Part shown: one piece after another, positions 2,240 to 56,387 of the stretch
How the letters are laid out: each line of letters begins with the position of its first letter
Position numbering within the stretch: the first letter of the stretch is position 1
NCBI RefSeq assembly: GCF_006345805.1
Contig: NC_043011.1
Span: 66,166,464 to 66,230,463 of the forward strand
DNA: 64,000 bases
Source of the DNA: Octopus sinensis
Taxonomy: Eukaryota
Reading direction: 5' to 3'
Notes under the pieces: model-generated
Seen by the model: only the letters and a program-made list of their open reading frames with translations
The model's database searches: none
Told to the model about the DNA's origin: nothing
Made by a program: the position numbers and the translations under genes

Positions 2240-5200
2240 ATGAAGCTCTGTATATTTACTTTTATCCTCTTCTTTGGTAAGTTGTTGATTCGTGAATTTT
2301 CCGTTAGAAATTAATTATCTCTATAACTTCACTATATAACTCCATGTAGCATTCAATCCACATAGCAATCTAGTTCTATATTGATTTGATGATGTATCGC
2401 ATGACCTATATATATTTCTACCGATCAACGAATAACGCAATTATTCAAGTCTTGTCACAATGCCAGCAATGTGGAGGGGTAGAAATCAATTACATCGACC
2501 TTAGGTTTTAAAAGCACAGAGCTTATCGACCGCGAAATAATCAAATGCAAAATTCCATCTCGGCGCGATTTGAACCCAGGACGTTAAGACAGACGATATC
2601 GCGCAAAGCATATTCCTCGCCGAGTTAACGATTCTACCATCCCCCCCTCTTAAGTCATTCATATATCAATGGTCTTTTTTCCCAGCATTTATATATTTAG
2701 AATTTATCTCTGTCCATAACATTCACCAGTTACATATATCTATCTATATATATATATAAGAGGCTTTGGGTCTTAATTGTGTGCACATTTTGGTATGTCA
2801 GAGGTTGGCGGCTAGACTAGTGGTCAGATCAAGCTGAAAATTGTCACAGGCATAGAATGCGCAATGAGGCAGGGAGTTGAGTAGGTTAAAACATCTTGAG
2901 AAATGTGGTTGCTATGGTGAGAAGAGTGATTTTGTATCGATTCAAGGGGTCTATAATGCCCTCCAGATTGGCGCGATTGGCATCTAATTTAATCTATAAA
3001 ATGAAAAAGGTGAACGTTGATACAAATTGGATTTTTATGTAAAAGGGGGTCTAAATGGGGCTGGAAGGGGATTAAAATTTATAGGAGAGGTGAGAAATTG
3101 ACTGGGAGAGGTGTTGGGGCGCTACAGTGATTGCCTTGCTGTGAAAACTGGGATTTTATTGATTTTGGGGGACACTTGGTCGTCTACATTGGACACATTT
3201 TTCCCGATTTCAGTTAAATTTTCAACATGGTAAAGTGGAAGCGGATTTGTAATTTAAGCGCGGAAGATCGGTTCGATATTTTGAAAATTAAGGTAATATA
3301 TATTTTGTATACAAAATGGCTGACAGTTAGTTAGGAGAGACACAAATAAGAAAGAAGAAAACAAAGGACCACTGATTCGGTCACAGGAGTGTGATGAAAG
3401 AACTCTGGCCGAAATAAGATTAAGATTAATGTACAAAATAAATAACACTGAAGCAAAATAACACCAAATATATAGTGCGTGTGTTTTTATTGGCTAAACT
3501 GGCAAAATGACCATTCCGAAATATAACAATATCTGTTTCAACACACGACTTCACATAAAGAATCTTGCACAGCAAATATATAACGTAAATATATATATAT
3601 ATATAATATATATATATATATATATAATATATATATATATATATATATATATATATATATATATATAATATATAACGTGACTGCGTGTGTATCGTTAGCG
3701 ATTTTTTCCTGGTATTCATGTTGCCACATCAATACTAGTATACTCGTCTGAACGCCAAAAAATACAGAACGAGAACAGTGAAGAAGTTTCAATGAAAATA
3801 ATAATGCAATACAAATGTATTACTTTCCAGTTGTCCATTTATCGAATGTTCTTCCTAGTGGTAAGACAATTTTTTTCCATGTTTGTTGCACACACGCATC
3901 TTTGCTAGTATATACGCGGTGAAGCTATACAATAGCGTTATATATATATATATTATATATAATATATATATATATATCGATTGCTATTTTCCAGTAAATA
4001 TTGGTGCGTTGTTGTACCATTTATCTACTTTTATATGTATAATTTAACCCTTATCGGGGCTACCTTTTACTGGAAAGTAATACATTTGTATTGCATTATT
4101 ATTTTCATATATATATATATATATATATATATATATATATATATATATATATATATATATGTGTGTGTGTGTGTGTGTGTGTGTGTATATATATATATAT
4201 ACAAGCAGGTTAGTGGTTACTAGAATATTAGTTAAATGTATTAGAACAATAGCAAGTATGCTTTCCAAATATCAGAAAAAAGTTCTAACAATGAAGGGAA
4301 TAGAATTTCGAGACAGGCCAGGAGTGATAGATTGAGAATACATTCCATGAATAAGCCAAGTTTTAAAATGGACTTTACTACAGATGCAGAATTCTCTTTC
4401 TAAAATATCCGATATTATTATTAAAAAATGCATTATAGGATCGAATTCAAAACGTACTTTGAATAAATAATTTCACATCGTAATTAGTTGAACAAATAAT
4501 AATAAACATTAATTTTATAGGAGTAACTATCTCAAGACGCTGCGAGGAAATAGCAAAACAGCATTGCCCAGTGCCATACGAAGCATATCGACGATATGAC
4601 TTCGACTGTACGTATGTATCATCGTATTTCTACGTTTATACTTACAAATAGTACATTGTACCTGTAACTATGTATACATACATACGTGTGTATATATATA
4701 TATATATATATATATATATATATATATATATATATCAACATTAAGAGAAAAGAAACTGATAGACGTTTGGAGTAATCAATTACTTTTTTTAATTATGTAT
4801 GTGTATACTTATATATATATATATATATATATATATATATATATATATATATATGTATGCGTATATATAATATATATGTTATTTAGAGGCAGTAGTCCCC
4901 TTCATCCCACCATATAAAATAATTTTAATTTAAATTAATACTTACTACTCATTTCTAAGCTACACATGTTTCTTGTGGTTCTTTTACGGTTCCTTAAGCA
5001 CACAGTATTTTACAGGAACCTTTCTTAAAATGTAAACCCAATCATCAGTCCTCTAAATAACTTTCTCATAATTCGACACCAAATACTATATTTTAAGTTT
5101 AACATATAAGTATGTGTATGTATAACTATGTTTACCGGACTTTACTGTGCAAGCCATAATTTAATTAAAATAAACTTAATAAAATTAAAAATTAAAAAAT

Positions 5201-56000: not shown

Positions 56001-56387
56001 GGGAAACTTGGAATCAATGTGGTGTGTAACGGTCATAAAAAATATGTGCAACAAAACATGTATAATTTTCATAATATTATTAGAACACGAAAGATATGCA
56101 TTTGTTAATAAAAATGCGCACATATGGCCAATTTCATTTCATCATTTATTAGTTAGGGACAAACGTTTTTGTCCCACCAGCTACAGCATGGAATCTGCCA
56201 CTCTTTAGCACATTTAGCTTCAAAATACGATTTCAGATCAAATGTCTCGCCCTGGAAATACATTTCATAAATATTCTTTCCATAAACAAGTATTAAAATC
56301 TTCTACATTTGTCTGTTCTCTTTACAGGTGAAATCCGGATCAGCAATCATTACTGCATTTGTGGGTATATATTTCATGCATAACTAA
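44047..56387 (+). CDS. Gene 3: secreted/GPI-anchored 6-Cys protein, 102 aa, 5 exons
   Basis: Exons 44047-44083, 44757-44850, 49458-49539, 55692-55727, 56328-56387, GT-AG, phases 1,2,0,0, total 309 nt. Protein MMKLIFIYLLLIGEVLTADKCVRLAETYCKESFVEYQKNSRMCKSYTDFLSCFNKLDSICHDNFKNFHKCFHLALHKPSSKDKVKSGSAIITAFVGIYFMHN*. Cys spacing is identical to genes 1 and 2; AATAAA at 56526-56531. Confidence 0.88.
44191..44560 (+). mobile_element. tRNA-derived SINE with internal (TA)n
   Basis: Same family as 13748 and 46075. Confidence 0.8.
45057..47101 (-). mobile_element. Tc1-like DNA transposon (DD34E), ~225-bp TIRs, TA target duplication, inactivated
   Basis: TA|CAATTGCGGCCAAAATG...CATTTTGGCCGCAACTG|TA. Transposase pieces 46469-46777, 45721-46068 (FSDESKF) and 45367-45669 (QDNAPCH-x34-E in SPDLNPIEN). 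Confidence 0.95.
46075..46492 (-). mobile_element. tRNA-derived SINE inserted into the Tc1 transposase
   Basis: Full head-to-tail SINE sequence interrupts the ORF between the DNA-binding and catalytic domains. Confidence 0.85.
47198..47500 (+). mobile_element. Mariner 5' remnant
   Basis: TACGAGG.. terminus; MATPLKMCT..IQFIW..SAAE..AQYGDS resembles mariner transposase N-termini. Confidence 0.55.
47680..47750 (-). mobile_element. Short RTE-like RT fragment
   Basis: Minus strand RQLCFADDCVVPANGEADL. Confidence 0.5.
48285..48400 (-). mobile_element. SINE fragment (family of 41833)
   Basis: Reverse complement of the head and body (cttgagcaagacac, ttcactcagctgtagt). Confidence 0.6.
48669..48722 (+). 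ncRNA. Hammerhead-like motif
   Basis: tca-CTGACGA-AGAG...CTCT-GAAA-TCG gtc CGA-TA-tgg: core, stem II and stem III present; stem I is short. Confidence 0.5.
49838..50045. repeat. (AAT)n microsatellite, LINE target
   Basis: Direct reading; further (AAT)n at 52206-52246 and 53414-53530. Confidence 0.95.
50046..52205 (+). mobile_element. R4/Dong-clade non-LTR retrotransposon (RT, CCHC, restriction-like endonuclease), 5'-truncated, frameshifted
   Basis: WIDYKKAFDS, RGIFQGDTLSP, LLYMDDLK; CRICG..ETINHIISSC; KPDIVV..LIDVSVP..EKLSKYKDL; embedded in (TAA)n. Confidence 0.9.
52247..53413 (+). mobile_element. Second, shorter R4/Dong 3' copy with an expanded (GAA)n
   Basis: Aligns to about 51097-52205 with few substitutions; (AAT)n on both sides. 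Confidence 0.9.
53690..54860 (-). mobile_element. Old degenerate R4-like LINE RT fragments
   Basis: WTDMNEL..RKIRK..SDATRFHVSRKRGG and IIYTKSDE..PDNILNFIRRSM parallel the ORF at 50074. Confidence 0.6.

Follow-up and report, generated by a model that had tools for sequence, protein, structure and literature searches.

What do the very short exons scattered over a 64-kb stretch of the Octopus sinensis genome encode, are they parts of working genes, and do their products belong to any protein family described so far? The stretch, referred to below as the window, comprises 64,000 nucleotides of contig NC_043011.1 (assembly GCF_006345805.1, positions 66,166,464 to 66,230,463, forward strand), in which an earlier note had proposed an unannotated, lineage-specific tandem family of three genes for small six-cysteine surface proteins held by a glycosylphosphatidylinositol (GPI) anchor. 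The comparative evidence presented here indicates that these three genes (g1, g2 and g3) are functional, code for proteins and belong to an extensive tandem array. Their products are best read, with a probability that we put at roughly 60%, as mini-proteins of the secretory pathway that are tethered to the cell surface by GPI and whose variable helical surface would serve the recognition or modulation of partners.

Results

Three five-exon genes

The gene models were rebuilt de novo from the sequence. A six-frame scan for C-x7-C-x13-C returned three non-repetitive matches, all on the + strand (at 4541, 18718 and 44780), and a scan for C-x7-C-x9-C located the exon-3 partners at 7544, 22141 and 49480. 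The exon-2 regions of the three genes can be aligned from the acceptor AG through the donor GT; the remaining exons were sought as a 37-nt first exon, a 60-nt last exon and a short phase-0 exon between exon 3 and the last one, and each gene offered one obvious candidate. The resulting genes, all on the + strand, span 2240-9616 (g1), 13058-26130 (g2) and 44047-56387 (g3), and upon joining give open frames of 99, 99 and 102 amino acids with no internal stop. Exon lengths in g1/g2/g3 are 37, 91/91/94, 82, 30/30/36 and 60 nt, and all 12 introns are of the GT-AG type with pyrimidine-rich acceptors and phases 1, 2, 0, 0. The cysteine spacing C-x7-C-x13-C-x8-C-x7-C-x9-C is matched exactly in all three joined proteins, g1 having one additional cysteine, located within the signal peptide. 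The three + strand five-exon genes of the earlier note, with their exon lengths, splice sites, phases and freedom from stops, were thus recovered in full by independent rebuilding, as was the exact cysteine spacing. The exons are as follows.

2240-2276, + strand: g1 exon 1, 37 nt; ATG and hydrophobic signal-peptide core MKLCIFTFILFF; donor GTAAGT, phase 1; orthologous to exon 1 of O. bimaculoides LOC128249945
4521-4611, + strand: g1 exon 2, 91 nt; remainder of the signal peptide and Cys1-Cys3 (CEEIAKQHCPVPYEAYRRYDFDC); phase 2
7522-7603, + strand: g1 exon 3, 82 nt; Cys4-Cys6 (FLRCFHGQDSKCYGFFKYHPNC); phase 0
8440-8469, + strand: g1 exon 4, 30 nt; polar linker HRNTSNKKVK with candidate omega site N73-T-S
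8470-8490, + strand: possible extension of g1 exon 4, 21 nt, through a downstream alternative donor GT; would add VCACDFP
9557-9616, + strand: g1 exon 5, 60 nt including the stop; hydrophobic C-terminal tail GTIQQVFLTVLGVTLLIKY; AATAAA overlapping the stop codon
13058-13094, + strand: g2 exon 1, 37 nt; MTLSAFTFVLLI
18698-18788, + strand: g2 exon 2, 91 nt; Cys1-Cys3 (CESMAKRFCSSTYNYYLSYDPNC)
22119-22200, + strand: g2 exon 3, 82 nt; Cys4-Cys6 (FLECFQGHDKECYKTFEYMPSC)
24378-24407, + strand: g2 exon 4, 30 nt; linker QNDGSNKKAK with candidate omega site D73-G-S
26071-26130, + strand: g2 exon 5, 60 nt; VTSQQTFLTALGVTLLIKY and stop
44047-44083, + strand: g3 exon 1, 37 nt; MMKLIFIYLLLI
44757-44850, + strand: g3 exon 2, 94 nt; Cys1-Cys3 (CVRLAETYCKESFVEYQKNSRMC)
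49458-49539, + strand: g3 exon 3, 82 nt; Cys4-Cys6 (FLSCFNKLDSICHDNFKNFHKC)
55692-55727, + strand: g3 exon 4, 36 nt; linker HLALHKPSSKDK
56328-56387, + strand: g3 exon 5, 60 nt; VKSGSAIITAFVGIYFMHN and stop

No fourth copy was found in the window by tblastn and relaxed pattern scans. A region on the - strand at 41007-41340, with a weak match at 41263-41340, was rejected as a fourth copy; it has stops in every frame and holds a single short motif.

Conservation in Octopus bimaculoides

In blastn comparisons, the window is collinear with Octopus bimaculoides chromosome CM046618.1 at ~50.158-50.203 Mb, with ~84% nucleotide identity. A profile of the g1-g3 proteins retrieves two O. bimaculoides RefSeq proteins of 99 and 102 amino acids, both labelled "uncharacterized protein", which are the orthologues of g1 (LOC128249945 isoform X2, XP_052830547.1, 99 amino acids, 82% amino acid identity) and g3 (LOC128249946, XP_052830548.1, 102 amino acids, 71% identity). 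The orthologue of g2 is likewise an intact five-exon gene for a protein of 99 amino acids (MKLSAFIFVLFIEVANSASCENLATKYC...LLIKY, 76% identity), at a place where no gene has been called in O. bimaculoides. Its exons, at ~50.1747-50.1777 Mb of CM046618.1, have the following coordinates in the O. bimaculoides locus L002.

16863-16899: exon 1 of the g2 orthologue
17809-17899: exon 2
18322-18403: exon 3
18926-18955: exon 4
19805-19864: exon 5

Exon lengths are identical and boundaries the same in all three orthologue pairs. The word "unannotated" in the earlier note holds at best for O. sinensis, as the exact proteins are missing from a collection of 15 billion proteins; for O. bimaculoides it does not, the orthologues of g1 and g3 being RefSeq models already. 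The residues VCACDFP that read-through of g1 exon 4 would add match the insert VCDCDFP of the other isoform of LOC128249945 (X1, XP_052830546.1), and an alternative exon-4 donor, which adds two cysteines, may therefore be conserved between the species.

Could the models nevertheless be decaying duplicates or chance chains of open reading frames without function? Some properties of the locus would fit such a reading: identity between the two species is no higher in the coding sequences (84-90%) than in the introns (~84%), the ratio of nonsynonymous to synonymous substitution rates (dN/dS) is near neutral, at 0.68 for g1, 0.53 for g2 and 0.82 for g3, and the g2 orthologue has escaped gene calling. 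Against it stand the six orthologous frames, in which starts, stops, splice sites (24 intron boundaries per species) and all 36 cysteine codons are intact in each gene of both species. In simulations at 16% neutral substitution, the three open reading frames were all retained in none of 20,000 runs, and the neutral probability of retaining the 18 cysteine codons is ~2e-4. Several family members are also listed in RefSeq with two isoforms; to our knowledge, the NCBI pipeline reports extra isoforms only where transcripts support them, which would extend to the pairs seen here. Since the exons are paralogous to one another, recur with the same structure in O. bimaculoides and keep their frames where simulated neutral sequences do not, g1-g3 go beyond chance, and a non-functional origin appears very improbable. 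Non-cysteine positions change at about two thirds of the neutral rate; when three regions of the coding sequence are compared, dN/dS is lowest in the linker-plus-tail (0.54). As frames, cysteines and splice sites are intact despite this near-neutral change, the framework is under selection and the rest of the surface almost free to vary.

Family range and the tandem array

An exhaustive hmmsearch with a domain-only profile of four sequences against 1.84 billion representative proteins yielded 16 proteins at E <= 0.001: 13 from O. bimaculoides, two from Octopus vulgaris and one from Anaeramoeba. The 15 Octopus matches have E-values from 1e-32 to 2e-4, and the 13 O. bimaculoides relatives are all "uncharacterized" and all encoded on chromosome CM046618.1. 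The Anaeramoeba match, an 'FGF' repeat protein (P0017, E = 3.4e-4), was rejected, as only 15 profile positions around a KFLQCF motif are matched, in five repeats. In another search, by word index and with 16 members, the sole additions were further O. bimaculoides entries (E = 3e-30 to 3e-12). The lineage restriction suggested in the earlier note is borne out in these profile searches, which detected relatives only in Octopus (O. bimaculoides and O. vulgaris); the profile search of the cysteine domain that the note had proposed, run here on proteins, matched no well-characterised family. A literature search by LOC identifier, and by orphan families of octopus that are cysteine-rich or GPI-linked, turned up no paper describing this one.

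The paralogues in O. bimaculoides (LOC128249821/822/829/831/832/838/839/931/940/941/944) form an array that extends over at least 50.06-50.24 Mb; in the ~104 kb sampled there, at four loci, 10 exon-2/exon-3 pairs were found, several of them uncalled. The array comprises at least 14-16 genes, and the three genes of the window, correctly described as a tandem family, are only three members of it. In the 16-member alignment, the sole invariant columns are the six cysteines and F48 of an FLxCF motif, with L10 and Y45 nearly invariant. The family spacing is C-x7-C-x13/14-C-x8-C-x7/8-C-x9/11-C with FLxCF, to which g1-g3 conform exactly. That the six cysteines are unchanged among 16 paralogues at 25-35% identity, and that the indels between subfamilies are all in frame, speaks further against decaying duplicates.

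Three further observations concern the composition of the array. The O. vulgaris matches, both 'hypothetical predicted proteins' (CAI9735849.1, P0004, 302 amino acids; CAI9735853.1, P0009, 257 amino acids), contain one to three six-cysteine domains together with repeated unrelated stretches, and from their sequences look like neighbouring members fused by the gene caller. An uncalled member lies 5' of the g1 orthologue in O. bimaculoides (L002 ~3470-4490; exon 2 CDTLGQSFCPLEYKGFRDPDPGC, exon 3 FLRCFKEIDKKCYKYFSYVPSC), and its counterpart in O. sinensis would lie immediately ahead of the window. The interval separating the orthologues of g2 and g3 in O. bimaculoides contains a gene for 108 amino acids (locus L001, 4392-7712) that has a 37-nt first and a 60-nt last exon, a divergent cysteine pattern and no E-box of the kind described below for the array promoters; the interval measures ~6.7 kb in O. 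bimaculoides versus ~400 bp in the window (43382-43796), so that this gene was gained or lost between the two species.

Domain sequence and predicted fold

The N-terminal hydrophobic signal proposed earlier can be recognised by inspection in all three proteins as a putative signal peptide, with a hydrophobic core of 10-12 residues after M(K/T/M) and, at positions -3/-1, small residues (T-I-S in g1, A-N-S in g2). The domain that follows could not be assigned to a named family, in keeping with the earlier note. When g1-g3 and the 16 aligned members were scanned against Pfam at E <= 10, the only matches lay below threshold, were scattered and were rejected as noise (CX9C in two members, single ones to Big defensin, RGM_N and others), and searches of PDB sequences, with a single sequence and with a 16-sequence profile, gave nothing below E = 0.38.

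The AlphaFold model computed from four sequences was poor, with a predicted local distance difference test score (pLDDT) of 58. With a 15-sequence alignment, the mean pLDDT per 10-residue block rises to 76-88 across residues 21-70, and an all-helical domain is predicted with helices at 20-27, 32-38, 43-52, 57-64 and 67-70, followed by a linker (73-87) with pLDDT below 50 and a tail drawn as a helix (83-98). The best Foldseek matches of the two models in the PDB have E = 1.9 (the model with pLDDT 58) and 5.9 (the better one), though a distant relative could escape such a search, the domain being small and the models including the signal and tail helices. The domain is therefore modelled, with moderate confidence, as a small all-alpha module with three presumed disulfides that could not be assigned to any known fold. 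The earlier note's exclusion of Ly6/uPAR agrees with this prediction, which is entirely helical and has no match to an LU domain.

The C-terminus and its proposed attachment to the membrane

Throughout the family, the last cysteine is followed by a polar stretch rich in Ser, Asn and Lys and then by an uncharged run, 10-18 residues long, after which 0-6 residues remain before the C-terminus. Rule-based inspection found a triplet of small residues 7-14 residues before the uncharged run in 16 of 19 sequences, and in g1 and g2 the candidate omega triplets N73-T-S and D73-G-S each lie 13 residues upstream of it. The run measures 12, 12 and 15 residues in g1, g2 and g3 and is followed by only KY, KY and HN, so that the 19-residue last exon is indeed hydrophobic and without a cytoplasmic segment, as had been noted. 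To judge by sequence, this is the layout of a classical GPI attachment signal. By rule-based inspection, the layout that the proposed GPI anchor would call for is thus present in nearly all family members, g3 being without a clean omega site.

The same residues might instead form a true transmembrane helix at the C-terminus, which would make the products very small type I membrane proteins with next to nothing on the cytoplasmic side. In the AlphaFold model, residues 83-98 form a single helix, and in the O. bimaculoides isoform P0020, which has a longer C-terminus, a hydrophobic stretch of 13 residues is followed by KK and a longer tail, resembling a transmembrane helix with a stop-transfer signal. 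However, the uncharged runs of g1-g3 are short for a plasma-membrane span and lack a positive-inside cluster after them, and in most of the sequences inspected a small-residue cluster lies 7-14 residues upstream in the manner of GPI signals. An ordinary plasma-membrane span is unlikely for g1 and g2 because 12 residues are too few, and for the family as a whole we consider the transmembrane alternative quite improbable.

Alternatively, the genes could encode soluble secreted cysteine-rich peptides similar to pheromones, antimicrobial peptides or venoms, the C-terminal exon being a propeptide or spliced out. Small size and a signal peptide would suit such peptides, fast change around a fixed cysteine framework is also typical of toxins and defence peptides, the linkers offer basic residues (KK, KVK, KDK) as potential processing sites, and the O. 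bimaculoides isoform P0006 (LOC128249931 X2) stops short of the tail. On the other hand, nearly all members, in both species, have retained the tail exon at much the same length, and this, together with the lowest dN/dS falling on the linker-plus-tail, suggests that the tail itself is functional; similarity to toxins or defensins is absent apart from the lone sub-threshold match to 'Big defensin' (one of 16 members, E = 0.011). We regard purely soluble peptides as unlikely, although soluble forms may also exist alongside GPI-tethered ones, since the tail is missing from or altered in some isoforms of O. bimaculoides.

A shared promoter element

Upstream of the start codons of g1-g3 lies a 12-mer palindrome, AACATATGTTAC, centred on the E-box CATATG, with just three sites in the window.

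2152-2163, palindromic: g1 promoter element AACATATGTTAC with CATATG E-box, 88 nt upstream of the ATG
12970-12981, palindromic: g2 promoter element AACATATGTTAC, 88 nt upstream of the ATG
43948-43959, palindromic: g3 promoter element GTAACATATGTTAC, 99 nt upstream of the ATG

Allowing at most one mismatch, the 12-mer gives six strand-hits in the window versus 1.17 expected, a number reached in none of 100 shuffles. The palindrome is also found 85-99 nt upstream in five O. bimaculoides members, distant paralogues included, and two further members there carry the E-box variants CATGTG and CATCTG. In an alignment of eight promoters, the E-box is the sole invariant block, with a TATA-like TAAAATAA ~20 nt downstream; conservation of this motif is also difficult to reconcile with non-functional models. 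The promoter of LOC128249945 (L002 9854-9930) has the E-box module in tandem triplicate, two CATCTG copies and then CATATG, each with a TGTTAC flank, versus a single copy at g1 in the window.

Symmetric CATATG is the preferred site of homodimers of group-A basic helix-loop-helix (bHLH) factors, such as Twist, Mist, Beta3/BHLHE22, Olig, Neurogenin and NeuroD (PMC8431614, PMC11602148). As g1-g3 and most of their relatives have the CATATG E-box in common, the identity of the motif suggests co-regulation of the array, with neural, sensory or secretory cells as possible sites, and the family is probably switched on together by a factor of this group. The promoter E-box of the array is newly recognised here.

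Genomic surroundings

The window is AT-rich (~34% GC) and abounds in transposon fragments and in microsatellites of the (TA)n and (TG)n types. The span of g3 is 12.3 kb in the window versus 3.7 kb in O. bimaculoides, and much of the ~18-kb spacer between g2 and g3 has no O. bimaculoides counterpart; these size differences are due to lineage-specific insertions, including reverse-transcriptase and Tc1/mariner fragments. The recognisable remnants are listed below.

50074-51297 and 52627-52983, + strand: remnants of an RVT_1 reverse transcriptase and zf-RVT, g3 intron 3
45721-46068, - strand: remnant of a Tc3-type transposase helix-turn-helix, g3 intron 2
60209-63555, - strand: element resembling a long interspersed nuclear element, with reverse transcriptase and C2H2 fingers, downstream of g3

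Other features of the window include a 479-bp unit in 2.8 tandem copies with 99% identity (14762-16119, g2 intron 1) and, in the g2-g3 spacer, a large near-perfect inverted repeat at 29204-32255, with arms totalling ~1.3 kb, 89-98% complementarity and innermost arms (29962-30487 and 30984-31509) 496 nt apart, which could have arisen as an inverted duplication or represent an element of the foldback type. A GC-rich island at 38001-40000 (43% GC versus ~33% around it) contains an open reading frame of 273 codons at 38663-39484, rich in Pro, Ser and Leu and with no Pfam match; the island probably belongs to an inserted element that the spacer of O. bimaculoides lacks. Neither Rfam nor tRNA scans detected any non-coding RNA in the window.

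Discussion

The features described above can be joined into a single scheme, in which the exons correspond to the parts of a precursor of ~100 residues. A cleavable signal peptide, with the cleavage site placed by inference, is encoded by exon 1 together with the first part of exon 2. Exons 2 and 3 provide a domain of ~52 residues with four or five short helices, as predicted by AlphaFold and presumably stapled by three disulfides, exon 4 a disordered linker rich in Ser, Asn and Lys, and exon 5 a hydrophobic tail of 12-15 residues without a cytoplasmic segment. Most likely, GPI transamidase would cut at a small residue of the linker (presumably N73 in g1 and D73 in g2) and attach the GPI lipid, so that a mini-protein of ~55 residues would stay anchored on the outside of the cell. 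The array has grown by tandem duplication. By analogy, fast surface change on a fixed cysteine framework combined with array expansion is a pattern typical of surfaces that recognise partners or modulate receptors. For the possible part in recognition or signalling raised in the earlier note, rapid evolution and the common promoter E-box are the only new leads.

Several findings weigh against this scheme or parts of it. The pooled dN/dS of 0.67 is not by itself significantly below 1 (Fisher p = 0.09), and the O. bimaculoides proteins are on record solely on the chromosome itself. The better AlphaFold model has an overall mean pLDDT of only 70, in the range of moderate confidence. In g3, the only triplet is S-G-S, which directly abuts the tail and leaves no spacer, its O. 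bimaculoides orthologue having S-S-S 8 residues upstream of the tail; to this are added the isoforms P0006, which ends before the tail, and P0020, with its longer C-terminus. Finally, assignment of the promoter element to bHLH factors is by motif alone, the binding data being from vertebrates.

Several known groups of proteins resemble the family in part. The O. bimaculoides models LOC128249945 and LOC128249946 share with g1 and g3 the five-exon structure, lengths, cysteine spacing, syntenic position and promoter E-box, and are themselves computational models without a name, domain or described function. Ly6/uPAR proteins such as CD59 and Lynx1 follow the same overall plan as the family described here: a signal peptide leads into a single small domain rich in disulfides, which a short linker joins to a hydrophobic C-terminus of the GPI type. 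They are likewise made as precursors of ~100 amino acids from small multi-exon genes in tandem clusters. A functional analogy as tethered receptor modulators is plausible, but LU domains adopt a three-finger beta fold and have 8-10 cysteines, whereas the domain described here has six and is predicted to be all-helical; among the 16 members, LU or toxin Pfam models gave no match at E <= 10. The GFR-alpha and GAS1 proteins are GPI-anchored animal proteins with all-alpha, cysteine-stapled extracellular domains, and GFR-alpha domains are about twice as long, with five helices and ~10 cysteines. There was no Pfam match to PF02351 (GDNF/GAS1), no PDB sequence match and, for the better model, no Foldseek match at E <= 5.

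Plant LTPG and LORELEI/LLG proteins and fungal CFEM proteins also combine a small helical domain, 3-4 disulfides and GPI tethering, often in expanded, fast-evolving families, but they have 8-Cys motifs with other spacing, come from unrelated lineages and show no sequence or fold match, so that the resemblance is at most convergent. CHCH (twin Cx9C) proteins share short helices with cysteine pairs, and the family described here has one C-x9-C; sub-threshold matches to PF16860 occur in two of 16 members (E ~0.2, 12 bits versus a cut-off of 26.4). CHCH proteins, however, reside in the mitochondrial intermembrane space and have two Cx9C pairs and no signal peptide, unlike the octopus proteins with their putative signal peptide, hydrophobic tail and other spacing. 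Two further candidates were rejected, namely saposin-like domains (SapB), which have a different 6-Cys spacing and gave no Pfam, PDB or Foldseek match, and the apicomplexan '6-Cys' s48/45 domains, which share only the name, being beta-sandwiches of ~120 amino acids as opposed to a predicted helical domain of ~52, and gave no Pfam match. In fold, cysteine number and profile match, the family lacks the defining features of Ly6/uPAR and of the other small cysteine-rich GPI proteins. We regard it as a hitherto undescribed family of a kind of protein that is itself known, and its true relatives are only uncharacterised Octopus models.

A bolder version of the GPI-tethered scheme can be formulated, which we consider speculative and improbable as a whole: an octopus-specific, fast-diversifying tandem array of helical proteins of undescribed fold, co-activated through the proneural-type CATATG E-box in neurons or sensory cells and acting as identity tags on the cell surface or as tethered receptor modulators, a helical counterpart of the Lynx/Ly6 prototoxins. 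If true, such an array would rank with the other groups of surface molecules that have expanded specifically in cephalopods.

The very short exons cause such genes to be overlooked in gene calling: the exact proteins of the window are in no database, the g2 orthologue is uncalled and neighbouring members in O. vulgaris appear fused. The family combines near-neutral evolution on a fixed disulfide framework with a common palindromic promoter element and the lack of any match in Pfam or among solved structures. Cephalopod genomes hold many lineage-restricted genes of unknown role, and here one group of these has been resolved into a clear, testable unit. Should the proteins not be displayed on neurons or sensory cells, they would represent one more uncharacterised orphan family of cephalopods; should they be found there, they would become candidate agents of cell recognition, or candidate modulators of receptors, peculiar to octopuses.

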